Notes under the pieces: generated by a model
Told to the model about the DNA's origin: nothing
What the model saw: the letters and a program-made list of their open reading frames with translations, nothing else
The model's database searches: none
DNA from: Monocercomonoides exilis PA203
Taxonomy: Eukaryota; Protista; Preaxostyla
DNA: 64,000 bases
Reading direction: 5' to 3'
Assembly (NCBI GenBank): GCA_001643675.2
Contig: LSRY02000007.1
Location: 62,001-126,000, forward strand
Program-made: the position numbers and the translations under genes
Part shown: piece after piece, positions 6,181-40,738 of the stretch
How the letters are laid out: the number at the start of each line of letters is the position of its first letter
How positions within the stretch are numbered: position 1 is the first letter of the stretch

Positions 6181-6211
<31 letters not shown>

Positions 6212-9947: not shown

Positions 9948-10962
9948 GGGTCAAAATAGTGTTTTCTTTTTAATGAGACTTTTTTCTTTATTGACACATT
10001 TTAGTTTTTGCATGCCAGTCATTGAATAAAGCTAGATGGACCTCAACACTTGGACGATGGTGTTTAAAAAACAAATACATTAAATTACTGGTTTGTTTTT
10101 TAAATTTTGTTTATTTTTCGTAGAAATACAGCAATTTTTTATTTAATTTGAAGTGACTTTTTTCAGCCGAAGAAGCATTTCACAAAAATTTGAAATCCAT
10201 TTTTATAAACTACTAGCATTATCCTTTTTATATTCAAAATCCTAAGCTTTACAACTTGTTTTTTCATCATTTTTTCACATTTCATTTTTTTATCAACATG
10301 CGAACATAAATTTGAAAAATTCTTTGTTATTAAAATAATGTGTTAAAAATAAAAATATGATATGAAAAATACACACTCTTATTAAGAAGTGTGAAAAAGG
10401 TTCAACATTAAAATTTTCTATTTGCATCAAACACATCAAAATAGAACAAGTTTGATCTCAGATCACTAAATGTTGTGACCATTCACCTGTTTGATGCAAA
10501 TAGAAAATTTTAATGTTGAACCTTTTTCACACTTCTTAATAAGAGTGTGTATTTTTCATATCATATTTTTATTTTTAACACATTATTTTAATAACAAAGA
10601 ATTTTTCAAATTTATGTTCGCATGTTGATAAAAAAATGAAATGTGAAAAAATGATGAAAAAACAAGTTGTAAAGCTTAGGATTTTGAATATAAAAAGGAT
10701 AATGCTAGTAGTTTATAAAAATGGATTTCAAATTTTTGTGAAATGCTTCTTCGGCTGAAAAAAGTCACTTCAAATTAAATAAAAAATTGCTGTATTTCTA
10801 CGAAAAATAAACAAAATTTAAAAAACAAACCAGTAATTTAATGTATTTGTTTTTTAAACACCATCGTCCAAGTGTTGAGGTCCATCTAGCTTTATTCAAT
10901 GACTGGCATGCAAAAACTAAAATGTGTCAATAAAGAAAAAAGTCTCATTAAAAAGTTGATCC
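9948..10962. mobile_element. Giant palindromic (foldback/MITE-like) element, copy E1
   Basis: Arms 9966-10433 and 10488-10955 are reverse complements (468 bp, no indel, no mismatch seen in the segments compared) around a 54-bp core. Right end GTTGATCC|TA; left end GGGTCAA is followed by an 11-bp insertion (9955-9965). Homologous to E2 and E3. Confidence 0.85.
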
Positions 10963-11951
10963 TATTTCACTTCAGTCATTTTCAATGAAAAATAATGTTT
11001 TGTGGACGGACTTTTCATGATAAATAAGAAACAAAATGTTTTTCTTTTTTTAAATTGCATATGAAATAACAAATTTTCATGTTGAAATGTGGTTGATTAT
11101 TTCTGAAATTATAACTATTTTTGGAGTGTTTATTATTTAAGGTCTTTATTTTTTCGAATGATTTTTTTCACTCAAATGTCAAAAACATCACATTGTTTCA
11201 AAAACAAATGATTTTGATGAATTCATAAAATACTATTAAAAACTTGAATAATTTCTATTTTATATTCATTCTTTGATATTCAATTCAATTCTTGTACCCG
11301 AATTTTTTTAGAAAAAATATGATTTCAAAAACAATCACCCACATCAATGTCACCTGTTAATTAATGAGAGAATAAGAATTATTTTTTATAATCAAAAAAT
11401 TTTTTAATTAAAATGTGAAAGAAATTATGTTTTTTTGATTCGTGCATAAAAGGTTTGAAAGCTTGTATTATCACATAAATAAGTAATTTCTTTCATTTCC
11501 TGATAAACAACCAATAGAAGAAATGAAATTTTCAAATTGCACTTAACTTTTTTGAATAATCAACAATTTGCAAAATAAGAAGAAAAAGCGTGATCTGATT
11601 TAAAATGAAAATGCATATTCAAGTCTCAAGAAAAAAGTTATTTTTAACACAAACAAAAACCTTGAAATTTAATAATTTCATTCTTCTTTTTCCGAATGTG
11701 AAATATACTTTTTCTAATTTAAATCATTTTTGGAACATGATCTGGAATGAAATTGAAAATGCATACTAATGGTGATAATTTTTTGTTGTCATCAGAAAAA
11801 TGAATGAAAGAATAATATTTTAATAAAAAATGTGAAAAAACCTTCTTGCATTTTTTTCAAATATAAACAAAATAATAAATATATTTTTCAAAATAAAAAA
11901 ACTTCTTTGTTTCTCCTTTTCTTTTTTCAACCCTTAACATTTAATTTTTAT

Positions 11952-14900
11952 ATGAACAGAACTTCACCTTTCATCGAAAGTATAATATATGGTGAGTTTG
12001 ATTTAAGAGAAGGACGAAGCATACGCTTTACATATCCCGAAGGATATGTTAGCCAAGATAAGTTTTCAATATTAATTTATTTTGATATTTATTTTTTTAA
12101 AAAATGTAAATTCACATGCTTTGGGGATTTAACAGACAATTACTTGTTGCCGAGCAAATGTTTCCTGACGGAGTATGCATTTACTTATATAGTATATATT
12201 TTAGTTTTTGCGATATCCAACTGTTTATCTTTTTAGGGTACTTTTTGCAAATAATAGTTTTTTTCAAATTGACTTTTCTCAGCTCAAGATAGAGCTTCTG
12301 ATTCCACTTTTTTTATTCTTAGACATACGAAATCAACAACAAAAAGGTATGTTAAAGAAGATAATATTGAAGGTTCTTGGGATGTTGTTGTTGATGAGAT
12401 ACCAATGGATGATGATGACTCTTCTTCAGATGATATGCCTTCAGATGACGTTGATTCAGTCATTTTGCCAGCATCTGTTTATCTCTATTCATTGGAGAAA
12501 AATATATGGTATTTGCTTGGAAAACCCGATCAAATTGGTGATTTTGCCAATGCCCCAATTGGATTTCATAATGTAGCCATGACTGAAGACATAATTGTAA
12601 CGCAAAAGACTATTATTGATGGAGAACAACCAGCAACACTTTCTTTTCCTATTCATCCAAATATCAATTGTACACAACTTTCTGATAAGTTAATTTGCGT
12701 TTATACGGACACTGATCAAGCGGTCTCATTTTTATTTGAAACAGATGAGCAGGTCAAACAATTCGTTGCACACATCGAAGAGGCAACTGCAGATGTCATG
12801 AACAAAACTGTGAAAATTCAACAAAAGAAGCTTTTGAAGAAGGCAGAAAAGGAAAAGAAGAGAAGAGAAAAACAAGAAGAAGAGCAAAAGAGGAACAATT
12901 CAAATAATGACGGGGATAAAGAAAGCGAATGCAAAAACATAGGCGATGATGGAACAAGTGAAGAATCTGGTTCTGCGAGCGCAAACGATTGCGGGGGAGC
13001 AAAAGGGGAGCAAAGCGCAGACAGTTCAGGCGATGCAGAGGAGCCTCTCTTTTGCATCTCGTCGGTGCGGCGGATGCTCGACCAGAATGCAGAGCGAGGT
13101 GCAGTCGTGCGGGCGCTGGCGTTTGTGTCGCGGTCGTGCCGAGTGGACTGCCTGCAGTCAGTGCTAACAGATACCCTCACCCAGTTCTTCGCCCACTTCA
13201 CCCCAAAACTGGTGGAGCGCATCTTCCACGAAATAAACGACGCTTTCGAACGCCGCTCAAAAGAGGACGAACGATTTTATCATTCGCTCTACTTTTCGAT
13301 GTGCCCTGAGCTGGATGTGATGAGAGGTGAAGAGCTGACAGAAGATGGATCAGCCTCATCGTCTTCTTCTGCATCTTCCTTGTCCACCTCAGATGATGCT
13401 CCAACCTCTTCTTCTTCTACTGCTGCTTCCACTTCCATTTCTTCTCTCTCCTTCTACTCGCCTTCTTCGATCTACTGCCGCAGGATAACAAGTCCTGATG
13501 AATCAAATTTGTTCAATGAGACATCGCTGCTTCAGATTGACATCGTTCATCCCGATTACCATGCTCCTCCACCTGCTCCTACTGCCAAGCGTCCAGTAAC
13601 ACTCAAAACATCCCCCTTTGTCTCATCCACTTATGGCTCTCCAGTTCCTTCTCCTTCTTCTTCCCCAGTCTCCTCTGCACCTTCTTCTCCCCCCTCTTCT
13701 TCTACTTCTTCATCCTCCTCTTCTTCATCCTCCTCCTCTTCGCAAGGCACTCTCCATCCTCGTCCTCCTTATCGGCCACCTCCACCAAAACCAAAATCGA
13801 AGCCTCCGTTTCCACCTTCACGCCCGCCACTGACGCCTTCTTCTTCAACTTCTTCTCTTTCCCAGTCTGCTCCTTCTGAGCATTCTGCACCTGCTTCTTC
13901 TCCTTCTTCTCCAACTGTATCTGATGCACCCTCTGCATCTACAACTTCTCCATCAGTGCAATCTTCATCATCTACCCCTTCTTCTTCCTCATCCTCCCCC
14001 TCTTCTTCTTCTTCTTCAACTTCTCCTCCCTCATCATCACATCCTTCTTCTTCCACACTCTCTCACTTCCTCATTCCCTCTCCCATCCGAAAGCAGGTGC
14101 GCTTTCCCCTCTCTCTTCACCCAGGTGAATTCTTCTCCTTGTCTCTCCAGCAGCTCTGCCGGCAATACTCCACGTCGCTCATGGCTATCTTCAATGCTGT
14201 GCTGATGGGGCAGCGTGTGCTCGTCTTCGGCTCGTCGCAGGGCGCAGACACGAAGCACATCACAAACACCGTCCTGTCCATTGCCCAGATGTTCATCCCC
14301 ACATTCAGCACAGCCTCCTTCTTGGCTCTTCGCATCTTCCCTTACGCCAACATGAATGATCTGTCCTTTCTGAATGTGCCTGGCTTTGTGGCTGGTGTGA
14401 ACAACTCGAAGATTGTGCAGATGCCTGACACGTGGGACCTCCTGGTGAATGTAGAGAAGAAGAGCGTCGAGTGGAAGAGTTCGGGACTGGCTTCGATGAT
14501 TGTGCCTATTCAGAACAATCCATCATCATCATCATCATCATCTTCTGCTGCTTCTTCCAATCCTGTCTCTCCACCACCTGGGCAACCTGCTTCTGAGATA
14601 ACAGTGACTGAAACGACTCAGAAAAAGCATCCGAAGAAAAGCAAAGAAAGCAGCCAGCAGCTTTCCCTGTCGCTGTCAGAGATGGAAGATACACTTGTTG
14701 CCTTCCCGCTGGGCGGAGGAGGAGCAGCCAACAGCAAAAAGACACCGAATTGGGAGCAGGCCGATCTGACGTTTATGACAGGGGTGCTGCAAGGGATGGA
14801 AGAGGGGAAGGACGAGCTGTGGGTGCGGGCGCAGTTCAGAGAGTATTCGACGAAGTTGGCGCTGATGGCATTTGCAGCATATCCATTTGTGGACGATGTG

Positions 14901-15693
14901 ACGAAGTTTGCGCAGACAGCACCAAACAGACTGAGGCTGGCGATGTTCCGAAGGACACAGACGGCTGAGATGTTCTGGCAGGAGCTGCAGGAAAAGAGGA
15001 GGAATGCTGCCATCAAAGAATGCGATCCAGAGAGAGACGTGGCGTTGCTGAGGGTGTGCCGATTGTTGATAAGAAGTGCTTTTTCATATGTAAATATTTC
15101 GATGATTTATTTATTTATTTATTTTCTCTTTTGTTTGTGTTCTTTTCCTTTTGCTCTTTGACTGTTTTGCTTCAGAACAATCCGCATCTTTCCATTCCGC
15201 AAACACATCAGTTGCTGAAAGAACTGTGCGAATCTGTGAACACACCAAGGCAAATAAAAGAGGTGTCATTTTCTTTCTTTCCCTCTCTTTTCTTTCATAA
15301 CAAAGAATGATTTCATTGTGTATTTATTTATCTATTGCTGCCTTTTTATTTAGCTGTTGATGCTTCTTCCTTATCGACATGGCGGGTTGAATATGATTGG
15401 CGCATATCTTCTGCACAACAGTTCAGAAGTTCGCCGTTTGGCTTCTGAGCTGCTGAAGAAGCTGCAATCGACAAAGGTCTGTTTTAATGCTTTTTTTAAC
15501 ATTTCATTTATTTTTATATTTGTTCATATTTATTATGTAATCTTTTGTGTATTTTCTTCACATTTCATTGCAAATGAATTGCAATGTGTTCTGTTTGAAC
15601 ATCTTCCATTTTGCGAATTGGATTTGATGTTAATAGCTGGGAAAAGAAGCATCAAACGGAATTAACTTTTATTTGGCGATTCAAATGACATAA
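11952..15693 (+). CDS. Afi1/MesA-like (Afi1 + SPA, DENN-related) polarity/trafficking protein, multi-exon
   Basis: N-terminal IIYGEFDLREGRSIRFTYP and LVAEQMFPDG resemble the Afi1 domain. LMAIFNAVLMGQRVLVFG...RIFPYANMNDLSFLNVPGFVAGVNN...WDLLVN matches the SPA/DENN core. Pro/Ser-rich insert at ~13350-14070; last exon ...INFYLAIQMT* ends at 15693. Confidence 0.75.
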
Positions 15694-16350
15694 TTTCAAT
15701 CACACTATTGTTTCATATTTATTTTATGTTATTCATCCATTCATTTAATTTGTATCGAGGCATTGATGACTTTGAAATTATGTATCTTTTCATTCGATTG
15801 CTCCCGCTGTTCGTAGAACGTGTAACATGCACTTTCTTATTTAGTGCATCAAACATATACTTATTTTCAACACACTTTTTATTCATTTTACGTTGTCCTT
15901 CTTTTCATATGCATTTATTTTTTCTGAATCTGACATTCGAATTTCAATGTCTGTGCAGCTTTCTGCTCTTTTTATTTTGTTAGCGAATAAATATGTTGTT
16001 TATTAACGAGTTCAGAGCAAGAATATTGTTAGATTTCAGATTCGAGATAAGTTTTTTTTTTTTTTTTTTTTTATTTATGAAAATGAAAATCATGTACACT
16101 GAATTTTGTGCGTACATAATCAATTTTAACTTAAAAGTTGGTTCGCAAAAGAAGGTTGTTGGAATGTCTCTTGTTGTTTCAAATGAAGAAGATGAAATGA
16201 AAGAAATTTTGCAATGAAAATCTAAAAATCAAACACATAACATTCAGATGAATTGATCACATTGAAGTATTCTTTCAGTGTATTTCAATTGGCATTAAGT
16301 TTCACATGTATTTGGTCTCCTATTAACTCTCATACAATGCAATGCATCAA

Positions 16351-18862
16351 TCAGGTGCGTGCAGACATCACCTTCTTCTCACCTGGTGCTGTTTTCTTCC
16401 ACACACAACATTCGCCTTCGCGTGTCGCTGCCAGAATCAGATCTCCCTCGTAATTGAACTCACTTTTGATGAATTCGCAATCAGAGTCTGTGCGAAGTAC
16501 TTGCAGACAGCGTAGTGTGCGGAAAGCAGAGGAAGAGAAATCTGATGCAGAACAAGACGAAGACTTTGACGTGGTTTTGCTGCTGCTTGCTTTGTGTGTG
16601 TGCTCGTCGCTGTTTATGCTTCCGTTGACATCCCACAACCTGCACTCGCCGTCAGCAGAGGACGAGAGAAGCAGCGTGCCTTGAGGATTGAATGAGAGCT
16701 GGGTGATTGAATCAGAATGAGGGAAAGAGGAAAGCACCGACTGCGGAGAAGAGGGAGAAGAGAGTGAAGTGAATGTCGAAAGAGAAGTGGAAGAGGCGAA
16801 CGGAACCAAAGAAACACGAGATTCGTCCTCATTCAGAGTAGACGGATCAATATCAGCAATTACGATTCGATATACAAAAATTTCTCCATCTGAAGAATTG
16901 CGGAAATGAGGAAAAGAAGAAAAAGAAAAATTTTCGCAAAATAAAAATACTTATTTTGAAGAGAAAACAACAATAATAAAAAAAGCATGCTGTCTAATCC
17001 GATTGCTGCAAGAGACGAAGATGGCGAGAGTGCTGAACATACAGCATTTGATGGTAGACTTAGAAATTACAGTAAATATTAATAAATAGCCATTAAGATT
17101 TAGAATGTGCCATTTCAAGAATTAAGAAGAATGATTGGAAATAAGTTGAGTGGAAGAATATATTGAAAAGTGTGAAAAAACATTAAACTTGTTTCAAATT
17201 TTTTCTATTAAAAATATGAAAATCTTTTCTTCTTCCTTTTTAATAACTTTTCTTCACAAGAATAAAACGCTCTCGTTTTCTCAAAAAATGTTTTGTAGTT
17301 TGCAGAAAGCTCTTGCAAAAGCATCAAATCATTCATTCTGGTTTGGAATTCATACCTTACGTTAGCGATATTTTTCCCTGTTTCTGTTTCAAACAGCGAA
17401 AATGTTCCGTTAAAAGTCGAAACGGATATCATCTCTCCTGTGAATGTGAAGTTGGCAGATGCTATTTCAGACAGTGAAGCACTTGGTAAAGCTGATGAAA
17501 CCGAAGCGAGCTTTGTTTTTCCTTCTTCTTGTTCTGATTTGGCACTCGAAACAAGCCGATGTACATTTTGAAGAGGGTTCATTGTGTGAAGTGAGCTGAG
17601 CAGAATTGCAAAATAGTGATAATTGATAAATTATGAATGAAGTGCACTTTAATCTTCATAAATAAAAATCAAAGTTTAAATGAACAAATATATTTCATTT
17701 CAAAAGATTGGCATTCTTTAATTTCGACTTGCACACTCACACATCATTTTGCACTTTTCATGATACAATTTTCAAAAATTGTGATATAAATCTATATAAT
17801 TCCCCGCAAAACATACCTTCCGACTGAATAATCCCATAATCGTACTGTTCCATCAAATGAAGCAGAAATGAGCAGATCATTCAATGGATGAAATGACAAT
17901 GCAACAATAGATGCAGTGTGCCCCTAAATGTAAAGATTCAATAAAAATGTTAGATTTAATGAATGTGTTTGAATAAAAAAGAACTTTTCACAATAAAAAT
18001 GTTCATCCAATGCAAACCAATAGATACGACACCATTTTCCCTTCATTTATATCCCAAACAATGCAATCACCGTTTAATCCTCCAGAAGCTGCAATATTTG
18101 CCTTTCTTTGAGATGAAGCTAAAGTCAACACTTCAGACATTTGTTTGTCTTCATCATTGGAGCAAAGCGTATGCAAATGCGCACCATTTTGAGCATCCCA
18201 TACCCTTACAGTTCTGTCAAAAGATCCTGTCAATATTTTATCACTTATTACGCATTAATGAAAGATGAAAAGAATAATTTCTACAGATACCTGAATGGAT
18301 TGTTAAAAATAGATATAAATACGACATTTGTATGCCCAGAAAGTTGAAAAAGCTGCGACCCTGTTTCTGTATTCCAAATTTTTGATGTACGATCATGGCT
18401 AGAAGTTATTACTCTGGAATATTTAATATTATCAAAAAATTTGAAAGCAAATAATACAAATACCTTGTTCCAGTTTTGTTAAAAAATGCATTTGTCAAAG
18501 GAAATGAGTGAGGTTTGAATTTTAGGCTCAAGTTATATCTTGAAAATATGAGACCTTCATTTTGTCTGGAAATAAGTTCTGCAAATAATACATTGTAAGA
18601 TTTTGGAAAAAAGATAATTTAAAAAAATACTATTTATCATTTTTAGTATTTGTGGACGTTTTGAAGATGATAGAACATCGACTTCACGGATTATTGAATC
18701 AGCAATAAGATCAGGATTTGAAGTTGAATTTAAATCTAATAAATCAATTGTTTGAGTTTTGACATCTCCTCTTTCATTTGCATATTCCAATATTATCCCA
18801 GGAGGAAAATATCGAAGAAGAAAACGCTTAAGGCCAGGCTTTATTGATGATTTTGTATTCAT
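16351..18862 (-). CDS. DAW1: Dynein assembly factor with WD repeats (DAW1/WDR69/ODA16), multi-exon
   Basis: N-terminus LKRFLLRYFPPGIILEY...KTQTIDLLDL is the ODA16/DAW1 signature. It is followed by WD40 exons (TSSHDRTSKIWN, TGSFDRTVRVWD, SASFDGTVRLWD, SSSADGECRLWD). Confidence 0.88.
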
Positions 18863-19064
18863 TATAAATTAAAAATGGGCAAAGAAAAATTGTTATGGAA
18901 TATGTCAAAATCTTCCTACAGTGCATGCTTGTTTAGTATTGAACTTCACAATGCAATTTTTACCAATATATGTATCTCAATTCAATTATAACCAAAAAAA
19001 TTAACTTGTTATTTGCAATCTTAATTCTTGAAAAAATATTTTCATGAAAATGTAATCTGTACAG

Positions 19065-22000
19065 AAAACTAAATGGGGATATCAACAGAAATTCTATTGG
19101 GAAAATCCAGATATATGTCATGAACAGGTTGTTGAATTGGATGGACCATTTTCAGCTATCACAGCATCAGGAACACTTGTTTATCGTATTTGTGTAATTG
19201 GAGATCAGAATGCTGGAAAATCAACATTTTTTCATGCTTTTACAAAGGGAAATGATCCTGGACATCTTGAGTTGACTTCATTATTTCCGTTTATGAGTGC
19301 TTCGTTTTTGAATCTTCGATTTCTTCTAAAAGAAGAAAGCAGTTATATGGATGGCATGGATTTTTGTTTTGTCTAAAGGACTTTTTATTAAAATTTTTTA
19401 TTCAATTTTATCTTTTCAATTTTATCAACAAGATTAGAACCTCCATTTATTGATACTGATTATGGACGTGCTGTTCTTCTTTTTACACTTGATGATTGGC
19501 TGTTTTTTTTGGAGGACAATAATATTCCTTTTCCTGATTGTGAGCCACTTTTAAGGGAAGGAGTTCGATATGTGGCTTTTGAGATGATTGAAGTTGGAGG
19601 TGATCATTTGGACTCTCTAATGGCTCCGAAAATTGAAGAAAAATTGAATATTTCAAAATTGGAAGGGAGCACGAAAGAAAGTGAAAGGGATGGCAGTCCG
19701 TCTGATGTTCTGTCACTGTCATCGACCATGCTGAAAGAAACGCAAGCAACGTTATATTTTATAAATAGCTCAACATTATTTAGTGACTTATCAACATCTA
19801 CTTTTTCAGAAGCGGGATTGAAACGGTTTTTGGAAAGGCTGCAGTTTATTTCATCTCTTCATGTGCATTCTTCGGATTCCACAAAAAGCTTTCCTTCTTT
19901 TGGTGGACCCAAAGAAAGTGATAAGAAGCCTGAGAAACACAAAATGGCATTTCTTTTGTGCAAATGCAAAGAAAATGCCACTATTGATACTGCTAAACTC
20001 AACAAAGCTTCTGAATTCTTTTATCACACAATGCTTCATATGCAACCATCTTTGGAAGAATCGTCTGAATCAACGTCGCATTTTCCTTTGCATTTTGATG
20101 AGCCACTTTGCTTAACGGAATTTTTATTCCGTCTTGTGAATAACTTCGTTGAGATTAGCAATTTATTCATTACAGTTGATAAAATTGTGGTTGCGGAGCA
20201 TTTTAATGTAGTTGGGTACACTCGCATTGATGAAGGATGCGAATCAAAGAAAGAAGAAGATTTCAAAGAAAAAGAAAATACAGAAAGAGATGAGCAAGAG
20301 ACAGGACTTGGAATGAGCCCGTTTTGCGAAAAGCGACCGCGAATGGTGAATGCTTCTTCAATAACACCAATTGATCCAATGCAAACTTCTTATTGTCTTC
20401 ATTCCATAATTCGGCAGTTTCCAGTATTGACGCTTAATCCAAGCGGAATGGTGAAGACTATTGTTATGTGCTGTCGAGGTGAATGGACGAAGAACACGAA
20501 TTCATTATTCTACACGATTGATCATCTGTTGCAATGCTGCTATGACAGAAGAATATCTGATGATGGCAGGAAGATTAAATATGATAACCATACGACTGTC
20601 GATGAAGCTGAAAACGAGAGAAAGCAAGATGAATCAAAATTAACTACAGATTTAAAGGATGAGAAAGAAAGCTCTGAAGAAATTCAACTTATTGACAATG
20701 GATGGATTACAAGTGACCAATTTTTGGATTATTTAAGTTTGATACTTTTTTATTTACAACGTGATGTTTCTTTGTATAATATGCACGAAATATTTGATCA
20801 TCATTTCATGTAATATCTTTTTTTTCTTCTATATTATTATCGTTATTTTTTTTCCTTTCAGTTTCCATTGAAGATGACAGCAGCAGAGATTCAGCTGAAA
20901 AGTTAAACGAAAAAGAATGTGAATCAAAGAATAGTACAACCTCTCCTCAGACTTCACCATCTGCTTATAAATCGTATGTTTTGCCTCCAAATCAGTCAGA
21001 CTCGATTTATGTTGTGTCTCGCACAGTAATAAATATGCAGCAGTCGCCTGAAAGAGATGCATCGCTTCAAAAAGACCACAAAAAACAAGAAAAATCAGAG
21101 CATCATTTTCTCGAGTTGCCAGCCCCACTTCTATTTCAGCAGTGCTATCAGGCTTCGTTCCACCTGTCATCAATCAGATACGCAATGGTGCCTTCTGATG
21201 TGAAGAAGATATTCAGTAGCGACAAAATGGATCATTTTGGAGAAAAAGATTTCAATGATAAAGAAATAAGTGATGTTCATTCTCTTTCTTCTGCGCTTCA
21301 AAATGACACACAACGAATGGGCGTTGTTTATTTGCGAATTCAGCAAACATCTTCGACTTCCTCTTTATCAACAGCCAACACTTCAACTTTGGCTCCTTCA
21401 AGTTTATTTATCAATTCTGAATCGAAAGAACTGCATTCATCACAAAATGTTTATCTCTTACGACTTCTTCCTTTGAATGCGCATTCTCTTTTCCGTTTGC
21501 CAAAGGATCTTGAAGCTTTCAATTTTATCACGAGATTTACACAGGTTAAACTTTTCTAAGTTGTCTAAATTGTTACAGTTCATTTTTACTTTTCTATGAA
21601 AATATCTTATACATCTTTGGTTAATGGCTTGCGTGTTATTCTTTTATTGATATCTTTTAGCTCAAAATTCCATCGTCGATGTGGGCAAACAAGAAATGGG
21701 CAAATCAAATCGAATGCACAAACTTTAACTCATTAAAAAAGAAGTTAATTGAATCAGTGAAAATGGAGTGGAATGATATTGCCATTAATGAAATTTCTCT
21801 GAACGACTCCAAGAATTTTATGCTGAAATGGGCGAGTTTTATTGAAAAGGTTTGATATTTTATTTTTAGGTGAAATGATAAGTTTATTTTTTTCTTTCTG
21901 TTACAGATTTTGGATGCATATCATATTCTGCAATTTATCCATCTTCCACAAAGCTTATCGAGCCATACCAACATTGAGCTGTCTCCGATTAGCAAATCAA

Positions 22001-22104
22001 AGTTTGATTGTTTGCGGAAGGAGGGGTTTATAATTCCAACATCAGCAATTGTCTCTCCTTCAAAAAATGATTTTGTTCTAAATTTAACATCACCACTTGA
22101 TTGA
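19065..22104 (+). CDS. Divergent P-loop (small-GTPase-like) domain protein with long uncharacterised C-terminus, multi-exon; true 5' end uncertain (probably a short exon at ~18875-18960)
   Basis: RICVIGDQNAGKST (G1-like, ~19185-19227), FEMIEVGG (G3-like, ~19578-19601) and a TLYFINSS strand. Consecutive same-strand ORFs 19137-22104 are separated by AT-rich GT..AG introns. Confidence 0.55.
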
Positions 22105-22929
22105 TATAGCAATTCAGAAATGATTTTTTCTTTTTCATTTGTATTCCTTTATTTTTCAAAATTAAAATTTGATTAATGCTCAAACAAATTTCAAAATTGT
22201 GCTTTTGCATTCGAAATAATAAAAATTTTCAACATTTTGTTTTCAACAATTAATCCATCAAATTTTCTATGAACTTTCTCATAATTTGAAACCAAGATTC
22301 ATTCATAATTGTCATTTGAAATGAAGAAAGATGAATCGTTTCGACAAAATTAGTTTCGTTTAACTCCTTTTTCAAAACCGAAAAAAGAACACTTTGGGAG
22401 GAAAAAAGGATAGAAAGAGAGAAAGGGTGTGTGTGCGTAAGTTTGAATGAATGCGTGCGACAGAGATTGATAGATTGACAGGTGCATTCTGTTAAACAAA
22501 TGCTTTCCATAGAGTGATTATCATTTGAAGAATTCAAACAAAATTAAAGATTTAAATTATTCTTCTTTTCAAAAACATGAATAGTACCAATTGATGAAAA
22601 TTAATTTTCAGAACATTTAGATATTTATATATGTGAATATAATTTTTTGTTGAGCATATAATAAAAATTTGTTGCATGTTGAGAATTTGAGGCAAAATTT
22701 TGAAAAATTGAGTATAACTTCACAATTAAAAATAAGTCAAAATAAACCAAAAAACATATAAAAATAGATAAAAATGTCAATATTAATACGAACAAAGTGC
22801 TTAATCCGTGCTTATTTAAAAGCAAATTCGTCATTCTTTTTTTAACAATATTATCAATTTTCGTAAAAAACACAACAGAGTCACGGCTCAAATTATTATA
22901 AATGCATTCCTTGTTCATTCAAATGCTTC

Positions 22930-30505: not shown

Positions 30506-30763
30506 GATGTTTCAATACTTGGAAAAAAGTATTGTTTGTGTAATTATTTGAATCCTTAAAGTTTTTACTGTCTGTTTTATGCTGTTTTTGTTATTTCTTA
30601 TTGTAATGTATGTAATTTTCATGTTCCTTGTTTCATTAAGCTTTATGTGTCATCATAATAACTTCAAAAATAAAAAATTATTATGGCCCAAATTTTTGAT
30701 CATTCTTCGATCTTTACATACTTAGATATATCGATATATCGTTGAGCTTTAAAATCTATCACC

Positions 30764-31486
30764 ATGTCAACTGAAATATCGCTGGACATAGAAGAAATGG
30801 AAAAAATAATTCCTCAAGCGACTAGACCTAATGTTAAACGTTTACTTGAGGGTGTTCTGCGAGATCTTAAGATTCAAAAGGATTCTCTTCCAGAACCTGC
30901 TCCAGTAACGCAACCAGAACGCATTACAAAGTCATATGTTGAAGCATCTAGTTGTGGTTGGGATCAAGAAGGACCGAATATTTTGTTGTTCTGGGAATTG
31001 CCAGAAGTTGGAACTGTTCCAAAAGATAAAATTAATGTGACATGGAATCCTGAGTCAATGATTTGCACAGTTGAAGGACTCAAAGGAAAGAATCATCGTC
31101 TTTCAATAGGACCATTCTTCAGAGAAATCAATACAACTGCTTCAACATATAAAGTTGGACGAAATAGAATAACTTTCACAGTTCAGAAAGAAGTAAAAGG
31201 AAATAGATGGGATGACCTCAAGAGGAAAGAAGACAAATTTAAGCCAAAGAAGAACAAGCCAACAGATAATAGCGATCCCGGAGCTGGTTTGATGGATCTT
31301 ATGAGAAATTTGTATGAAGAAGGAGATGATGAAATGAAGCGTACAATTGCAAAAGCATGGACAGAAAGCAGAGAACAGCAAGCTCGTGGTGGAATGCCAG
31401 GAATGGGAGGGATGGGAGGAATGGGAGGAATGGGTGGTATGGGTGGTATGGGTGGTATGGGAGGCATGGGAGATATGGACTTCTAA
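30764..31486 (+). CDS. CACYBP: Calcyclin-binding protein / Siah-interacting protein (CS + SGS domains) with GGM-repeat tail
   Basis: N-terminal helical hairpin (ATRPNVKRLL), CS domain (GWDQ...VEGLKGKNHRL...WDDL) and SGS motif GLMDLMRNLYEEGDDEMKRTIAKAWTES; intronless. Confidence 0.88.
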   Translation: MSTEISLDIEEMEKIIPQATRPNVKRLLEGVLRDLKIQKDSLPEPAPVTQPERITKSYVEASSCGWDQEGPNILLFWELPEVGTVPKDKINVTWNPESMICTVEGLKGKNHRLSIGPFFREINTTASTYKVGRNRITFTVQKEVKGNRWDDLKRKEDKFKPKKNKPTDNSDPGAGLMDLMRNLYEEGDDEMKRTIAKAWTESREQQARGGMPGMGGMGGMGGMGGMGGMGGMGGMGDMDF

Positions 31487-32593
31487 ATTGCCTTTCATAC
31501 TTCTCATTTTTTTCACTTCTGTTATGAAATTTCAAACATTCGACATTTTAACTTTTGAATCAGTTTTTTCTTTTATGATTGAAAATTGTCACAATTATAC
31601 AAATTATTTTAGTAATAATCTTCTAAATTAACTACATATGTGTAACTTTCATTTTTAGACTTTCAAAAATTGTTAAAAAAAAAAAAAAAGAGCAATTTAT
31701 CTACGCAACTTCATGTTTCAATCTTTTTTATTAAAAAATTAGTTTTTTCAATGATAGAGAGAATAATAATCACACAAAAATTAATAAAGCAAAACATAAT
31801 AATAAACAACTCATTAAAATATTCAAATCATAATAACTGTTTGTCGCGCTGATTGTGTATATTTTGAAAATTTGGATATACCGACATCAAACTGATTGCA
31901 CAAGCAACACGATAATTTGCTCTCAGAGATATAACTAGTCCAAAAGATCCACAGAAAAAAAAGACTCAACCACAACGAACCATTTGACGCAGTTCGTCGT
32001 GTATATCTTAAATTTCAGAATCATTTGCGGCTTGTTCTCTTGACTGTTCACAACTTTTCATTTTCATTGCATACCATAACAAATCAATTTTCATTCAATA
32101 ATTGCAGCTTCTGTTTCAAAATTTTTCATATATTCAATGTCAAAAACAAAAATAAATATCTCAACAAAATTTCATCCTCTTGTAATAAGCATAAACATCT
32201 TCCCTCAAATTTTGTAATCATTTCAACAAATTTTCATCAGAATACTTTTCAAAATCATTCTTTTCTTTGAACACGCTTCTTCTTTAAAGTTCATATTCAA
32301 ATAATAAGTGAAATTTTTCATTTTGAAGCTCAACATCATTTAAATGATTTTTTGCTTTCGCTTTCCATTCATAATTTATTAACATCTTCAATAATGTATT
32401 GTGAAATTATTTCCTGAAAAAAATATATTTAAAAATCAATAAAAAATTGATAATTAATCATCAAAAATTAAATCTCAATTCCAAAAAAATTAGCATGTTC
32501 AAGAAAATCTCAGACGGGTAAACGTGTCAACATTATGATTTCTGACAAATCAATCAAGCTAAACGTTACCAGTATCATCATTTTAAAAAATGC

Positions 32594-32620
32594 TCTCTCT
32601 CTCTCTCTATCTATCTATCT
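32594..32620. repeat. (CT)n-(CTAT)n microsatellite
   Basis: ctctctctctctctctatctatctatct seen directly. Confidence 0.8.
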
Positions 32621-33105
32621 CAAAAGAACATTAATCGAGAACATACTGTGATTGAATGATATTAAATCAAAAAAATACTTTTCCTCGCAAAAGATAATAT
32701 ATATCCTATTGAAAAAATAATTATATTAAAAAAACAAAAATGAGATTTCATTAGTAAAAAGATATCTAGTTCATAAAATCGAAATTTCTCAATCAACAAG
32801 TATCAGAAAAGGTGAAATTGTTTTTCTCTTCATGGATATCAGATACCATAGAGATAATCAGTTTCATTCATCATTATATTACTATTTCTCGTTTAAAACA
32901 AATTTTCAACTTTTATCATACGTATTGCTCAATTAAATAGTGTTCTCTTTTGTCTTTAGCAAAACTGATCAATCGCTTCGCACAAAATATTCAACGAAAA
33001 TCAACTTTCATTCTCACGTTTATAGATCTTAACCATTTTTAGATATAAATTTCCATAATTTGCAATAGGTTTTATTGCCATAACATTTTTTTGAGAAATA
33101 AATTA

Positions 33106-34143
33106 ATGTCTGGCTCTGCTGTGGTCGACATAATTGATCCAAATTTGAAGGATGCTACTTTCAGACAAATTGTCACATTTGCAGAAAAGGCAAAGGAACT
33201 GGACATCTTGTCAAATCGGTACAAAGATTATTTGAAGCATGATTCCAGTTTGTTGAATTGTTTTATTTGTATTTCTTTGGAATTTCTTCTTTCAAAACAG
33301 AAAAATCACAAGAAGTGTTGGAATTGACAAGGGCTTTACTTCAAAAACAAGAACTTGATACTGTTCCTTTGAATCCTGTATTTTTTTTTAATTTATGAAA
33401 TTGATTTTTATTTTGACGTTTTCTAAGATAATAAAAGAAATGGATACAATCGCAAGAGATTGCTTAAATGATTACATTAATCAAACGACATCGTTTACCT
33501 TGTGGTTTATGCTTGACAAGCCAGAAATATCAGATACAGATCAATTTGACGCTCAAGTTATTGTATGATAAACAAATTGTTCATATTGATTTTTTTCATT
33601 CCATCATATAATTGTTATTGATGCGACTGATTTTCGTTTTGTAAAGGAAACGGTTCTTGGCTTATTGATCCAGTATAAAACATTTGCAGTGGAAATGCTT
33701 GAACATTTTGAATTGTATCATAACACAAGAGGAAAATTATTTGTAAAAGTGTGTTTGATGAAGCCTCTTTTTATGCATTAAAATTATTGGCTTGAAAATG
33801 AATTTCAATTTATTCTGAAAAATGAAATCAATTTCAAAAGTATTTTATCTATCCTGGGGTTGAAGACATCGCAGATGCAATTGTCGAAACAGATGCAAAG
33901 CAACTGGCAGAAGCTGCACAAATTTTAATAGATTTAAAGTGTGTTCTGTTTCTTTATGATATTTTTATTATTTAAAAATTAATATCTTTATTTCGATAAC
34001 ATTTCATTCTCTCAATCAAATTGGAATTTTTCGTATCCAAATGGTTCATCAGGGACTATTATATTCATATACATGATCAAATTGTTAAAAATATTGAAAA
34101 AATGACAAAATCTCCAAAGAAACAGAAACATGGAAGATCTTGA
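33106..34143 (+). CDS. Proteasome activator PA28/REG (11S) family subunit, six short exons (largely missed by the ORF track)
   Basis: Spliced WFMLDKPEISDTDQFDAQVI|ETV...YHNTRGKLFVK|YFIYPGVEDIADAIVETDAKQ...|YIHIHDQIVKNIEKMTKSP aligns with the PA28 C-terminal helices (YY..RAK...KYPHVEDY...DEKE...LHD.I.KN.EKI..P). Confidence 0.75.
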
Positions 34144-34381
34144 AAAAGTCAAAATTTTTTTCAAAATTGATGAAATTTATGATTTGCTCTTTATTTCTAA
34201 GCTATTAAAGTTCATTTCATCTCTCAATCACTTCAACGCATTGACTTTCCGTTTTTATAAACATTATTATAATATTTTTGTAAATATGAATTGAATGATT
34301 TCATTTTAATTTGTATTTTAAAAATATTGTTATGTGAATCGATCAAATTGTCAACCGATCAAGCCCTTTTACAGTCGCGTC

Positions 34382-35287
34382 ATGTTTAAAGAAGGTTATT
34401 GCAACTTTTCAATTTGAATGACTTATTTATTATTTACTATTTTTGTGGCTGTATGTATTTATTTTGTGTTTAAATCTTAAAATGAAAAAAATATTAGTTG
34501 TGTTCTTGTCAATATTTTGTCCCTGCAATGCATGCCAGTCGAGATGATTTTCCACCGAGAAAATCTTTTTCATCACATCACACCCAACAACAAATGCCAC
34601 AACAAATTCCACAACAGATGCCACAGCAAATGCCTCAAGTTCAGAAACAAATTGATCCTTCTGTTTGAAAAAATTCAATTTTTTTTTATTATCTTTTTGT
34701 TATTCGATTCTGTCAATGATAGAGTTACATGCCATCACCTACTTCCATGACATTTTTACCACCTCAAGATGAATATAGTATTTTGGATTATGATTCACCT
34801 TCTACTTATATTGATGATAGAGCCAGAAACTACCCTCCTCAGCAACCCCAACAGCAAATGCAGCATCAACCTCAACAGCAACAGCAACAAAAACAATTTC
34901 ATCCCATTCGACCATTGCCTCCTCATGTTATTGAACATATGAAAGAAGATGAAGAGATTTCAAAGATCAGAAAAAGTGCTGTTACAAATCGTGGAAATTT
35001 CATTGCAAGAAAAGCAGTTCCAAATTTTGATCCTCATTCTGCATTTCCAGCGGTGTGCTTCACTGTCTCATATTTATTCTCATCTCAAATTTCTTTATCA
35101 TTATTATTCCTTTATGTAGCATCCAACTCCTCTATTCTCTTCTCCACCTCCTACAGAGGTGATGGTTTGGAGCGATGAGCCATTTCTACCTCTTTGCAAT
35201 CAAGACACTTCATGTAGACGATACTATACAGTTTGTGATTGTTCCATGCGAGATCAATATCCCTGGTTGTGTTGGGATGTTCAGTGA
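34382..35287 (+). CDS. Hypothetical Gln/Pro-rich protein, multi-exon; boundaries uncertain
   Basis: Exons encode QQQMPQQIPQQMPQQMPQ and YPPQQPQQQMQHQPQQQQQQ; a Cys-containing last exon ends ...WLCWDVQ*. Confidence 0.45.
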
Positions 35288-35780
35288 GAAAGGAATAATA
35301 TAGGCTTTGGCTTAAATGATAAAAGAATGGAAGTTATATTACTTTTTTTAACGATAGGTGGTATTTTTTTCTTTTATTATTGTTATTCGATGTATTCTTC
35401 GTTCATTTCAAATTGATGTGTGATCATGACAGTGATAATTTTAATAAATAAATAAGGCTGGGGTTGTTGCATCACGTTAGTATTATTCTTGATTTTTCAA
35501 TTTCACTTTTTTTTTTCCAATAAAATACGCACGAACAAGAAATCAAAACGATAGCATAAACAAATGAAGTGGACTTAAGAAGCAATTGAACCAACAAATT
35601 AAAATGAACATTCAAAAATTTTTATTCAAATTCAAAGATAAATTAATTAATTTTATCTTCAATTTTTGTCTTCACTTTCTTTTCAATTTAAATACATTTG
35701 CAAAAGAGAGAAAAGCGGATTAAACAACTGTTACAAATAAATATTACTAGTCATAATGAGTATTTCCAAAAAATATAAAT

Positions 35781-37429
35781 CTATTCCTGTGCTTTGCTGG
35801 CGTCTTCTTTCTTTTCTTCTTCTATTGTTTCATTTTTTTCTTCTTTCTTTTCTTCTTCGGTTTTGTTTTCATTCTTTTCTTCATCTTTCGTTTGTTCGTC
35901 TTCTTTAGCCTTTTCTTCTTCTTTCTCTTCTTCTTTGTGTTGTTCACTTTCCTTTGGTTTCTTTTGTTCCATCTCTGCTAAAATAGCATCTACCACAAGT
36001 TGGCACATCGAAGGGAGCTCATTTGCCAGAGGAGTTTCGAAGCAGAATCGCACAGGCTGCTCCGCTGTTGGCCCAGGAACACTGTCAACAACAATTTGAA
36101 AAGAACACACATGATATGGAAAAAATGGTGCGTGACGGTTAAAATTAATTGATTAAAAAAAGATTGTAATTAAAAGATTAAGGAAAGGGAAATAGAAAGA
36201 AAACAAGAGAAATGAAAGGGGAAAAAAAATATAAAAGAGTTTCAATCGCAAAAGAAAAGGACAGAAACAATGAAAAATATGTTATGACTTTCGAATCAAA
36301 ACGACTTTAAAATTGAGGCGTTTTGGTTACGCTGTTTAAAGTAAGATTCCAAACCTGTAAGCAAATGTAGATGTAGGTGCGTGGAGTGCCCATCCAATTA
36401 TCTCTCGAAATGAATTCACTCTGATTTGCATATTCTGCCAATTCTTCCCTTTCTTCATATCTAAAGGCTTGTAGTATGTATAAATTCCATTTTTGTTTAT
36501 TGCAATAATTCCTGGCCTCCTTTTTGGTTCCCCGCCATCAATTGGTATAACCTCTACGCCTTCATAAAATACACTCCCAAATACATCTGGGACCATTTCC
36601 TTCAGCATATTCAAATATCTAACTTTTCCTTCAAACTCACTTGCTATTGATGATGATCCAAGACGTATGTATGCTTCGAGTAACTGCTTCTCCCATTGAG
36701 CAGGCTTCTTTCTTTCAATGATGCCAGTTGGAATAAAACGATTGACCAATCCAGCGGATCTTAAAAATCAAAACACATTTTTAAAACAAGTTGAAAGATA
36801 TGTAAAAATCAAGTTATTTTTTGTTATATTGTTGGCTAAATCCAATTTTCACAATTGATTCAAACGTTAAAAAGCCAGATTTATGCTTAGAAGCAGACGG
36901 CTGCCCAAAAGTTACCCGTAAGTCAACAGCTGCAAGCTCTAGAAAATCGTGTTCATCTAAAACATAATATCCTCGAAGTACTTCTTCCCTCATCTAATAA
37001 ATATAAAATGAATAAATATCAAAGCTTTTCAAAATAATAATAATAATAACTGCAAACTTGTATAAAAGTCATATGAACAGCAACAGCATCTGTCATATTA
37101 GTTTCAAGAAAATGCCTCCTCTTGTAAACAAGTGTATTTGGGGGTGTGACTCGTGGAACAAGGTTTTCAGGAAGCAAAAAACGATCTGTGTTCGTTAAAT
37201 GTAAATTTTTTGAATATATAAGCGGTTTTCATTAATAATAAATATGTGATGTTTTTTGCATACCGTATGTCACTCCTCCATCCGAAAATGATTCAAAAGA
37301 TGCAAAAGCTTCTGTATCAACTGTAAGTTGTATTTTGGAAGCGATTTTCTGATTAAGTTCACTAACAGTTGTGTCATCGCCAATGACAAATTTTTTGGTG
37401 CTTTTATCCTCAAATACAACCTCGATCAT
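35781..37429 (-). CDS. Stand-alone FERM-domain protein with acidic/Lys-rich tail, multi-exon
   Basis: F1 ubiquitin-like MIEVVFEDKSTKKFVIGDDTTVSEL; F2 LVYKRRHF...EVLRGYY...FLELAA...RYLNMLKEMVPDVFGSVFY; F3 PH-like IIAINKNGIY...IIGW...FCFETP...ILAEM. Confidence 0.78.
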
Positions 37430-37607
37430 TATTGACTTATTTCATTAAGGGTTTTCACTAATAGATAAGTAGAAAAAAACATGATATCAATCAAACGAAA
37501 AGCACAAATAAGAATTTTTCTTTTTCGTTTCATGCATTGTTTGTGAGATTTCTATTTAAATAAGTGTCGTCACAGAAGAAAATTTTAAATTGAATCAAAA
37601 TTATATA

Positions 37608-38614
37608 GGGTCAGCTTTTTAATGGGACTTTTTCCTTTATTGGCACTTTTTTTATTTTCGATCAAAAAAGCTGAGAAGTGAAAAGTGGCTTTCATCATTT
37701 GGATAACCGATTTTAACAAAGTTTATTCAATTTATTTCCGGTTTGTTTTTTAATTTTTGTTTATTATTTAACGAGATATTACGTTTTTTTGATAAATTTG
37801 AATTGGCTTTTCCTACTCAACCAAGCATTTCCAGAAAATGAAAAATACTGTTTTCAAAAGCACTAACTTTTATCTAACTGTTGTTTAATTCTTTTTTTTG
37901 ACAAACATTTTTTTCGTGTTATTTTTGCATTTCATTTTTTTAACAACATGCTAACATAAAACTGATTGTTTCTTTGTAAATATAATGAAATGATAAAAAT
38001 AAAAATGTGATATGAAAAACAAATACCCTAATAATGAAGTTTTATAAAAATAGAACATAGTTTTTTTCTTTTAGTCAAGAACAGCCAAATGGCTCCAACA
38101 ATATTTGATCTTCGATCAAACTTTTGTGACATTGTTAAGTTCTGGACATATAGAAAAAAACTATGTTCTATTTTTATAAAACTTCATTATTAGGGTATTT
38201 GTTTTTCATATCACATTTTTATTTTTATCATTTCATTATATTTACAAAGAAACAATCAGTTTTATGTTAGCATGTTGTTAAAAAAATGAAATGCAAAAAT
38301 AACACGAAAAAAATGTTTGTCAAAAAAAAGAATTAAACAACAGTTAGATAAAAGTTAGTGCTTTTGAAAACAGTATTTTTCATTTTCTGGAAATGCTTGG
38401 TTGAGTAGGAAAAGCCAATTCAAATTTATCAAAAAAACGTAATATCTCGTTAAATAATAAACAAAAATTAAAAAACAAACCGGAAATAAATTGAATAAAC
38501 TTTGTTAAAATCGGTTATCCAAATGATGAAAGCCACTTTTCACTTCTCAGCTTTTTTGATCGAAAATAAAAAAAGTGCCAATAAAGGAAAAAGTCCCATA
38601 AAAAAAGTTGACCC
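37608..38614. mobile_element. Giant palindromic (foldback/MITE-like) element, copy E2
   Basis: TA|GGGTCAGC...GTTGACCC|TA. Arms 37622-38069 and 38152-38599 are reverse complements (448 bp) around an 82-bp core containing TTTGATC-TTC-GATCAAA. Confidence 0.88.
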
Positions 38615-38740
38615 TATTTAAAAGGAAATGCATCATTTTTTAACTATTCAAGAACAAAGTGTGCTCACGAAATAAAAATCAAGAGTATTTGAACAGCAAA
38701 ACATAAGTTATTAATGCCACTAATCAAATAAAATTTTCAT

Positions 38741-38822
38741 TTCGAAATCGAATTATTTATTTTCGATTTTGTATAATTATTTCCGAAATCGAATTATTTT
38801 TTTTGAAATAGAATTATTTTTG
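38741..38822 (+). repeat. Degenerate ~20-bp tandem repeat (about 4 units, consensus ~TTCCGAAATCGAATTATTTT)
   Basis: ttcgaaatcgaattatttat / tttcgattttgtataattat / ttccgaaatcgaattatttt / ttttgaaatagaattatttt. Confidence 0.6.
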
Positions 38823-39138
38823 GTGTTAATGATTCAAAAACAATTATGAGGAATAAAACTGATTGATTAATTCGATAACTATTAAAAGCTAAATGTTGAA
38901 AAGAAAAACGGAAAGCATTCAAAAGTTTTGAATAAAATGAAAACAGTCTCAGAAAACCCAGAAAAACTGAAAGGCAACCAAAGCTTGGAAAACATTCTAT
39001 TCTGAGAAAGGAATAAGTGGGAATATGTTATTTTCAAATAAAGGAAAACGAAATATTTCAGAAATTATGATTTTGACTTTGTTTTCTTTTGAGAAAAAAA
39101 AATTTTTTTTGGATGATTTTCACGTAATTTTTTGAGTC

Positions 39139-39139
<1 letters not shown>

Positions 39140-39172
<33 letters not shown>
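39140..39172 (+). repeat. Poly(A) tract, 33 nt
   Basis: Seen directly. Confidence 0.9.
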
Positions 39173-39174
<2 letters not shown>

Positions 39175-39298
39175 ACTCATCCCTTTTAAACCTCAATAAT
39201 ATTATGCATTTGAAAAAATAGAATTCTTTATGATCTATTTACGCAGCGATAATCAAATAAACACAAAAAACCCCTTCCAGTTGCAAAACTCAACAACC

Positions 39299-39535
39299 TT
39301 ACCAATAATAATATGAAATTCCAGAACAATTGACAATGCTTATAACATATGGCTTCTTTTCATCAGTCAGAACAAAATCATTAACAACAGAGGATATGAT
39401 TTCAACACCTGTAAAAAACCACAACAGATCCTACGTGCAACCATAAAGTTTGCTCTCTGTAACTTCTCCCTCATCAAATATGGATTCAAAACCAACCTCA
39501 ACTTTTCCTTTACCCTCTCCCAGCCACTCACTTTC
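39299..39535 (-). pseudogene. Decayed coding fragment between E2 and E3
   Basis: Minus frame SEWLGEGKGKVEVGFESIFDEGEVTESKLYGCT*DLLWFFTGVEIISSVVNDFVLTDEKKPYVISIVNCSGISYYYW* has coding-like composition and one in-frame TAG. Confidence 0.35.
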
Positions 39536-39748
39536 TTAGTGCATCATACAAAAATCACAGGCAATTATGAACTTTTTGAACATCAATAAAATTAATTCAA
39601 TTTTTCTATCCGTATTCCCTTTTATGATTGAACGATAAACTTCTTTTCTCAAGCGTTTTCTCTTCTGGCTTTATAACTTTCATTCAACTTGAAAGTTTAG
39701 AATTTCTTCATTCATGTTTGCACTTTCAATCCAAGATGACACACTGTA

Positions 39749-40738
39749 GGGTCAACTTTTTTATGGGACTTTTTCTTTATTGGCACTTTTTTTGTTTTTG
39801 ACTGCCAACTTTCAACAAACGTTGATTGGCTTTCAGTATTTCAAAAAACCTTTTTTACAAGTTTAACACAATTTATTTACAGTTTGTTTTTTAATTTTTG
39901 TTTATTATTTCACGAGATATTACGTTTTTTTGAAAAATTTGCATTGAAAAAGCATTTCCAGAAAATGAAAAATACTGTTTTCAAAAGCACTAACTTTTGT
40001 CTAACAACTTTTAAATTCTTTTTTTTCATAAACACTTTTTTCTTGTTTTTTTCACATTTCATTTTTAACAACATTCTAACATAAAACCGATTATTTCTTT
40101 GTTCATATAATGAAATGAAAAAAATAAAAATTTGATATGAAAAGCAAATAGTCTAATAATAAAGTATTGGAAAAATGAAACATTAATTTTTTCTATTTGT
40201 CAAGAACTTAACTTTTTTACAAAAACTTGATCATCGATTATTTTAAGAAAGCGCCATTTGTCCGTTTTTGTTAAATAGAAAAAATTAATGTTTCATTTTT
40301 CCAATACTTTATTATTAGACTATTTGCTTTTCATATCAAATTTTTATTTTTTTCATTTCATTATATGAACAAAGAAATAATCGGTTTTATGTTAGAATGT
40401 TGTTAAAAAAATGAAATGTGAAAAAAACAAGAAAAAAGTGTTTATGAAAAAAAAGAATTTAAAAGTTGTTAGACAAAAGTTAGTGCTTTTGAAAACAGTA
40501 TTTTTCATTTTCTGGAAATGCTTGGTTGAGTGGGAAAAGCCAATGCAAATTTTTCAAAAAAACGTAATATCTCGTGAAATAATAAACAAAAATTAAAAAA
40601 CAAACTGTAAATAAATTGTGTTAAACTTGTAAAAAAGGTTTTTTGAAATACTGAAAGCCAATCAACGTTTGTTGAAAGTTGGCAGTCAAAAACAAAAAAA
40701 GTGCCAATAAAGAAAAAGTCCCATAAAAAAGTTGACCC
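39749..40738. mobile_element. Giant palindromic (foldback/MITE-like) element, copy E3
   Basis: TA|GGGTCAACTTTTTTATGGGAC...GTCCCATAAAAAAGTTGACCC|TA. Arms 39749-40198 and 40273-40738; the left arm has a 17-to-3 bp replacement near 39947 and a 2-bp homopolymer difference; 74-bp core. Confidence 0.88.

Follow-up and report, generated by a model that had tools for sequence, protein, structure and literature searches.

Concerted evolution of the arms in a family of palindromic, fold-back-type elements of Monocercomonoides exilis

A 64,000-nt stretch of the Monocercomonoides exilis PA203 genome (contig LSRY02000007.1, positions 62,001-126,000; hereafter, the window, whose own positions serve as coordinates) contains three homologous palindromes of about 1 kbp, termed E1, E2, and E3. 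Their arms are free of substitutions within each copy except at the edges of the homology, whereas the copies have diverged strongly from each other, and almost every difference between copies is present on both arms. These elements represent a very clean case of concerted arm evolution in a fold-back family, a finding that is new for this organism and a process that is known in kind. They probably belong to a high-copy family of non-coding fold-back elements, presumably mobilized in trans, whose arms co-evolve because one arm is repeatedly copied onto the other by repair.

Palindrome structure and arm identity

The palindromes had been described in an earlier note made from the sequence alone, and an inverted-repeat search combined with base-by-base complement checks recovered all three at the same coordinates (Table 1). 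Each consists of two arms of 450-470 bp around a short loop of 55-70 bp (54-82 bp including degenerate inner edges). The inverted-repeat search placed the arms of E1 at 9954-10433/10488-10967 and those of E2 at 37616-38082/38139-38605, and returned the E3 arms as three in-register blocks. Exact complement checks gave 468 bp of perfect pairing in E1 (no mismatches, no gaps) and 448 bp without any mismatch in E2. The left arm of E3 is perfect over three blocks (39747-39946, 39950-40059, and 40062-40198; about 447 bp with no substitutions), which are interrupted by a complex indel, where 17 bp of the right arm (40524-40540) stand against 3 bp of the left (39947-39949), and by a 2-bp difference in homopolymer run length at 40060/61. 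The original description of the arms as essentially substitution-free is therefore correct for all three copies, with the reservation that the E3 arms carry two indels. Pooled over the three elements, there were no substitutions in 1306 arm columns, which puts the upper bound of arm divergence at about 0.23%, or at most about 1.4% of the E2-E3 distance.

Next to the flanking TA, the tips read GGGTCA(A/G)C, and there is a conserved terminal region of about 50 bp with two GG(G/C)ACTTTTT motifs. No open reading frame (ORF) of at least 110 amino acids (aa) overlaps E1-E3, and the elements have no Pfam match; the non-coding nature, the GGGTCA...TGACCC ends, and the TA flanks proposed earlier were all found. 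Rfam and tRNA scans of the window returned zero matches, so E1-E3 are not known RNA genes. Their GC content (0.24-0.25) is not above that of adjacent non-coding DNA. When folded as single-stranded DNA, E3 reached -506 kcal/mol, compared to -109 +/- 6 kcal/mol for shuffled sequences. Neither an autonomous partner nor a fourth copy turned up in the window when E1-E3 and the complete window sequence were compared with it by BLAST and when it was scanned for the tip pattern with 3 mismatches.

Table 1 Coordinates of the three palindromic elements and their parts in the window
Feature	Position	Strand	Remarks
E1 element, diverged subfamily	9948-10962	.	damaged left tip, altered right tip
E1 left arm	9966-10433	.	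exact reverse complement of 10488-10955, 468 bp
E1 loop, 54 bp, asymmetric	10434-10487	+	dyad TGATC-N3-GATCA at 10453-10465
E1 right arm	10488-10955	.	
E2 element	37608-38614	.	TA at 37606-37607 and 38615-38616; loop inverted relative to E1/E3
E2 left arm	37622-38069	.	exact reverse complement of 38152-38599, 448 bp
E2 loop and degenerate inner arm edges	38070-38151	-	dyad TGATC-N3-GATCA at 38106-38118
E2 right arm	38152-38599	.	
E3 element	39749-40738	.	TA at 39747-39748 and 40739-40740; both tips identical
E3 left arm	39747-40198	.	zero substitutions and two indels relative to the right arm
E3 loop and degenerate inner arm edges	40199-40272	+	dyad TGATC-N3-GATTA at 40228-40240
E3 right arm	40273-40740	.	

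Mirrored divergence between copies

A six-arm alignment, in which identities were counted over interior arm columns, paired the arms by element. Interior arm identity was 0.83-0.84 between E2 and E3 and 0.66-0.67 between E1 and either of the others (Jukes-Cantor distances of 0.18 and 0.45, respectively), close to the by-eye estimates of the earlier note (80-85% and 65-70%). E2 and E3 appear to form one subfamily and E1 another. Substitutions between copies were also said to be mirrored on both arms, and the counts agree: 69 mirrored vs. 3 unmirrored columns for E2/E3, 149 vs. 1 for E1/E2, and 140 vs. 2 for E1/E3, the unmirrored columns adjoining the E3 indel or sitting at the loop edge. The arms of a copy are thus far more alike than the related palindromes are, with zero arm substitutions against 69-149 differences present on both arms. 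Identity between E2 and E3 is patchy, with 0.54-0.65 in a module located 60-130 bp from the tip and 0.93-0.97 in the following 120 bp. This module of about 70 bp is nearly unalignable between copies, yet it is the same on both arms of each copy, and because single compensating substitutions cannot yield a replaced module that is mirrored, copying from arm to arm is required. Provided that the assembly is correct, there is hardly any doubt that copying of some kind has occurred.

In all three copies the loops are asymmetric, and they are homologous once the E2 loop is reversed, sharing the centre AA(G/A)(T/C)TTGATC-N3-GAT(C/T)A with GCCATT on one side. Since the loop is both homologous and asymmetric in E1-E3, the palindrome is older than the divergence among the copies (0.18-0.45 substitutions per site), and the common ancestor of E1-E3 was already two-armed around the same loop.

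Tips and edges of the homology

Substitutions between the arms are restricted to the margins of the homologous stretch: the outer 17-20 bp in E1 and E2, and the inner ~15 bp in E2 and E3. In E2, the arms differ in the tips at 37614, 37615, and 37621, and over the inner 13 bp, which contain four mismatches. The earlier note had placed the differences of E1 and E2 in the outermost ~15-20 bp. Its corollary, that the tips are the worst-preserved part and the elements the opposite of a terminal inverted repeat (TIR) transposon, did not hold. Between copies, the outermost ~40 bp are the best-conserved part (identity 0.87-1.0), as in any TIR element and as would be expected of ends to which a transposase binds.

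The left tip of E2 has a variant, C-TTTTTAATG, that is the state on both arms of E1, and the right tip of E2 is identical to the E3 tips; both E2 variants are confirmed by flank-anchored short-read contigs. The E2 tips look like two family variants, the left one apparently missed by conversion, rather than the product of random decay. In E1, the left tip (9948-9966) consists of GGGTCAA, 11 extra bases, and then C-TTTTTAATG, with TT instead of TA in the flank, and the right tip reads GGATCAAC. The 11-base insert may be filler from a failed excision or from break repair at a transposon end, and the E1 copy looks disabled by these tip changes despite its perfect arms. The clustering of differences at the edges is compatible with tracts of gene conversion and with the repair of mismatches once a stem has snapped back, and polishing with ambiguous reads would leave the same pattern.

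Copy number and transcription

Public de Bruijn contigs, among them those of the runs X1 and X2 and RNA contigs of run X5, were placed on positions 36500-41800. Contig depth in X1 was 670-5600 over the elements vs. 33 in unique flanks, i.e., 20-170x the single-copy level (ratios in X2 were similar), and 3456 X1 contigs were at least 90% alike (741 at >=99%, 1377 at 95-99%, and 1338 at 90-95%). Depth and the number of similar contigs together show a high-copy family, which comprises tens to hundreds of copies. The existence of many near-identical copies had been named in advance as evidence that each variant is merely a young insertion of an ordinary subfamily; by depth the family is indeed high-copy, which bears out this expectation in part, but arm copying along the lineages that lead to E1, E2, and E3 is still needed.

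E2 and E3 contain letters that are rare in the family: a different letter accounts, for instance, for 91% of the depth at 37681 (mirrored at 38540) and for 98% at 38484 (mirrored at 37737). In the assembly, the rare letters at such sites stand on both arms, an indication that copying operates within individual copies. Where an alternative letter is mirrored, it is uninformative in this respect, because the same contig can be placed on either arm. At the paired positions 37807 and 38414, the depth was unequal (654 vs. 2339); contigs matching both arms are thus placed unevenly, and the arms cannot be counted by contig depth.

RNA contigs, which show presence only and not absence, left the interiors of E1-E3 uncovered, and the earlier suggestion of a long-hairpin RNA source gains no support from them. 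One X5 contig (40705-40965, no differences) begins in the last 36 bp of E3 and extends 225 bp into the right flank, so that a transcript starts or ends in the E3 terminus or reads through this terminus. Another X5 contig of 287 nt contains a 48-nt copy of the element terminal region (matching 39752-39799 with 4 differences) with unrelated sequence on both sides; a solo tip fragment is transcribed elsewhere in the genome.

A scan of public metagenomes with the tip pattern gave 0 matches. Eight metagenome loci with the conserved inner motif were dismissed as chance, the match being limited to the 24-27 bp seed.

Termini and classification

The ends of the elements read TA-GGGTCA(A/G)C...G(T/C)TGACCC-TA, with TA at five of the six element ends (E1 left is the exception). 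The flanks of E1-E3 have no direct repeat longer than TA, including repeats of 3, 4, 8, and 9 bp, and the flanking TA may belong to the repeat itself rather than to a duplication. Long arms around a short middle, the absence of coding capacity, and the presence of many dispersed copies, three features of the fold-back structural class, were all found. Structurally, E1-E3 are thus best regarded as putative non-autonomous fold-back (hairpin-type) DNA transposons: tip conservation, TA flanks, and the lack of ORFs and Pfam matches fit a non-autonomous TIR element. The TA ends without a longer duplication would fit a TA-targeting superfamily (Tc1/mariner-pogo). No transposase domain was detected by Pfam in 18 large ORFs of the window.

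Other assignments were considered and rejected. A Tc4-type insertion (CTNAG site, TNA duplication) does not fit the flanks of E2 (tata-GGG...CCC-tatt) or E3 (tgta-GGG...CCC-taat), the 8-10 bp duplication of Mutator or classical Foldback types is missing at all three elements, and a Merlin-type site lacks a fitting target duplication at E1-E3.

The only candidate for an empty-site joint, from 39682 to 40751 in one contig, does not match the ends of E3. Besides E3, it lacks 64 bp on the left and 10 bp past the right TA of E3, and the sequences after both break points are alike; with break points off the E3 ends, it was rejected as a clean empty site. On either side of E3, DNA contigs occur in two versions of similar depth, at 39415-39568 (0 vs. 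8 differences) and at 40781-40975 (0 vs. 12-13 differences plus 6-7 gaps). The two versions and the joint could mean that the E3 surroundings exist as another allele or as a recently formed paralogue, possibly without E3.

Maintenance of arm identity

In the scenario that we favour, a DDE transposase with TA targets, probably of the Tc1/mariner-pogo type and encoded outside the window, would have mobilized E1-E3 in trans. The mirrored changes show that the arms do not evolve independently and that along each lineage one arm has repeatedly served as the template for the other. The copying is most likely recombinational repair of the usual kind, acting on inverted repeats that lie close together: a break or stalled fork in one arm would find its nearest homologous template in the other arm, only 55 bp away. 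Alternatively, a strand may snap back into a hairpin, with mismatches in the stem being repaired. Repair tracts of this kind seldom extend to the limits of the homology, so that differences could persist in the outermost ~17-20 bp and the innermost ~15 bp, which is where the arm-to-arm substitutions are located. Copying in place is favoured by E1, which combines disabled tips with flawless arms, and by the rare letters that occur on both arms, and we lean slightly towards the view that copying acts on resident copies.

Several observations weigh against this scenario. E3 retains two arm indels, showing that correction is not instantaneous or that larger heterologies are spared, and the absence of a GC excess in E1-E3 means that there is no signature of GC-biased conversion. 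Mobility, TA duplication, and copy ages are what we infer from the sequence, the window containing neither a transposase nor a clean empty site. Arm identity depends on one Oxford Nanopore Technologies (ONT) assembly, and short-read contigs are fragmented within the elements. Lastly, contigs with the rare letters of E2 sum to a depth of 37-42, or 1.1-1.3x single-copy, whereas about 2x is expected if these letters are on both arms; allelic differences or uneven contig placement could explain the shortfall.

It is arguable, and to us doubtful, that copying takes place only during transposition or gap repair. The corresponding account, which we likewise hold only as a minority view, assumes young copies whose symmetry is renewed at birth alone (transposition or gap repair with template switching or snap-back) and which then decay as residents. 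Such an account would accommodate the high copy number of a seemingly prolific family, the intact tips of E2 and E3 (those of E3 being identical to each other), and the two unrepaired arm indels that E3 already has, and events of this kind have been proposed for Mutator (PMC10401008). It is harder to reconcile with E1, whose damaged and altered tips should make it immobile and whose 468-bp arms are perfect nonetheless, with the rare family letters on both arms of E2 and E3, and with the freedom from arm substitutions in three of three copies.

A more far-reaching version of copying in place, with the correction built into the element, is unlikely in our judgement: with every round of replication, a hairpin or cruciform would form from the conserved loop dyad, host repair would clear stem mismatches so that resident copies never age, hairpins would seed multi-kilobase palindromes, and the family would be a main driver of genome architecture. 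The earlier note had proposed that one arm is continually copied onto the other. The copying is upheld by the mirrored differences and the replaced module, but "continually", in place, over-reads what the window shows. Nor is the system undescribed, as had been suggested, given that end regeneration has been described for Mutator (PMC10401008) and arm conversion for palindromes (PMC8600007).

An artefact of assembly or polishing, in which the arms truly differ by a few per cent, were homogenized by multi-mapping reads, and kept their differences only at anchored edges, is improbable. The assembly was made with Canu and then polished with Nanopolish and ten rounds of Pilon (PMC8767320), the edge pattern is also expected from polishing, and the depth of the E2 rare-letter contigs is closer to 1x than to 2x single-copy. 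Against this, ONT reads (N50 8.9 kb; PMC8767320) span a 1-kb element and provide a separate consensus for each arm, and polishing with multi-mapping reads would pull sequences to the family majority, whereas E2 and E3 retain rare letters on both arms. The E3 arm indels survived polishing, and the E2 tip variants have their flank-anchored contigs. Even with a few hidden differences, the arms would be nowhere near the 16-34% that separates copies.

Independent fold-back births, each palindrome being a recent duplication of a different one-armed parent, are very improbable, because arm length, the tips at either end, and the asymmetric, homologous loop with its central dyad are common to all copies, and random fold-backs would not in three separate cases stop precisely at the tip of a transposon on each side. 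Selection on a hairpin product (RNA or DNA cruciform) that fixed paired changes singly is scarcely credible: the structure is extremely stable and its central dyad is conserved, but selection cannot keep about 1300 neutral-looking AT-rich positions perfect, and it is at odds with 450 bp without even a G-T type mismatch, with the wholesale replacement of a ~70-bp module on both arms, and with the lack of RNA contigs over the interiors.

Genomic surroundings

Just to the right of E2, the region 38624-38977 is repeated in the genome (depth 1200-3000 vs. 33), and three tandem GAAATCGAATTATTT-like units are located at approximately 38745-38825. Between E2 and E3 there is a run of about 34 A at 39140-39173, and reads seem to be cut at 39128-39184. 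A spliced minus-strand gene lies at 36500-37396, with two introns that are absent from the RNA contigs, one of 106 nt (36760-36865) and one of 78 nt (37186-37263); these introns read CT..AC on the plus strand and hence GT..AG in the direction of the gene. The distance from the last RNA-covered base to the start of E2, on the upstream side of this gene, is about 210 bp.

Two intron-free ORFs, 54-3941 (minus strand) and 5422-9231 (plus strand), encode 1295 and 1269 aa, respectively, without a Pfam match. The latter begins with serine-rich, low-complexity sequence, and E1 is located 717 bp downstream of its stop codon. The window also holds kinase ORFs, and a flanking protein with a DENN/SPA domain was assigned by a protein atlas no more closely than to eukaryotes. 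The exact products of the flanking ORFs 5422-9228 and 12405-15158 were not found on record.

Significance

There is continuing debate, based largely on indirect evidence from phylogenies (for example, Mutator, PMC10401008), on how inverted ends of transposons stay symmetric as subfamilies drift. The M. exilis assembly comprises 101 contigs and 82.3 Mb with 37% GC, and the accompanying paper reports 46% repeats, with 35% of the genome unclassified, and does not mention MITEs (miniature inverted-repeat transposable elements), inverted repeats, or palindromes (PMC8767320). The GC content of the window, its short GT..AG introns, and its kinase ORFs fit this assembly, which has a large kinase family. 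The family described here is probably part of these unclassified repeats, and no literature combining Monocercomonoides exilis with transposable elements was found in the collection of papers searched. The signal is unusually clean, with copies up to 34% diverged, arms without substitutions, and a replaced module that is mirrored. The compact assembly is at chromosome scale and the family numbers tens to hundreds of members, so that the full set of copies could be used to measure how far tracts extend, how strong the edge effect is, how indels fare compared with substitutions, and whether copying depends on transposition.

Comparison with known systems

Like E1-E3, FB, Galileo, and Tetris of Drosophila and Tc4 of C. 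elegans consist mostly of one long inverted repeat with a short unique middle; the arms of Tc4 are about 770 bp long and its loop about 57 bp. Fold-back transposons also share with E1-E3 the occurrence as non-coding dispersed copies in several subfamilies, and such subfamilies and their structural variation have been described (PMC3573991, PMC4079207). The arms of E1-E3 differ from those of FB, Galileo, and Tetris in having no internal tandem repeats. The flanks are also different, with TA at E1-E3 compared to duplications of 7-10 bp in fold-back elements and CTNAG/TNA in Tc4 (PMC11071193). The host of E1-E3 is an oxymonad protist, and no coding relative is known.

A parallel in process is found in the maize Mutator "homomorphs", where similarity is higher between the left and the right end of an element than between ends from different subfamilies (PMC10401008). 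This symmetry was explained by periodic end-to-end copying, for example by break repair templated by the other end, and one Mutator element has identical ends over 1,100 bases (PMC10401008). Whereas Mutator symmetry concerns ends of about 200 bp in larger, partly coding elements with 9-bp duplications, about 93% of the non-coding element is copied in E1-E3, around a 55-bp spacer. Sex-chromosome palindromes likewise have arms that are >99% identical, a short spacer, and intrachromosomal conversion while related palindromes diverge (PMC8600007, PMC8981503, bioRxiv 10.1101/800185). However, they measure 10 kb to Mb, are genic and immobile, and undergo GC-biased conversion, in contrast to the 1-kb, high-copy, AT-rich E1-E3 with no GC excess.

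Palindromic MITEs of the Tc1/mariner group (Stowaway-like; PMC3814204) resemble E1-E3 in their TA flanks, non-coding nature, high copy number, hairpin consensus, and presumed mobilization in trans. These MITEs are usually 80-500 bp long, and single copies normally accumulate arm mismatches with age, whereas E1-E3 are 1 kb long and have perfect arms.

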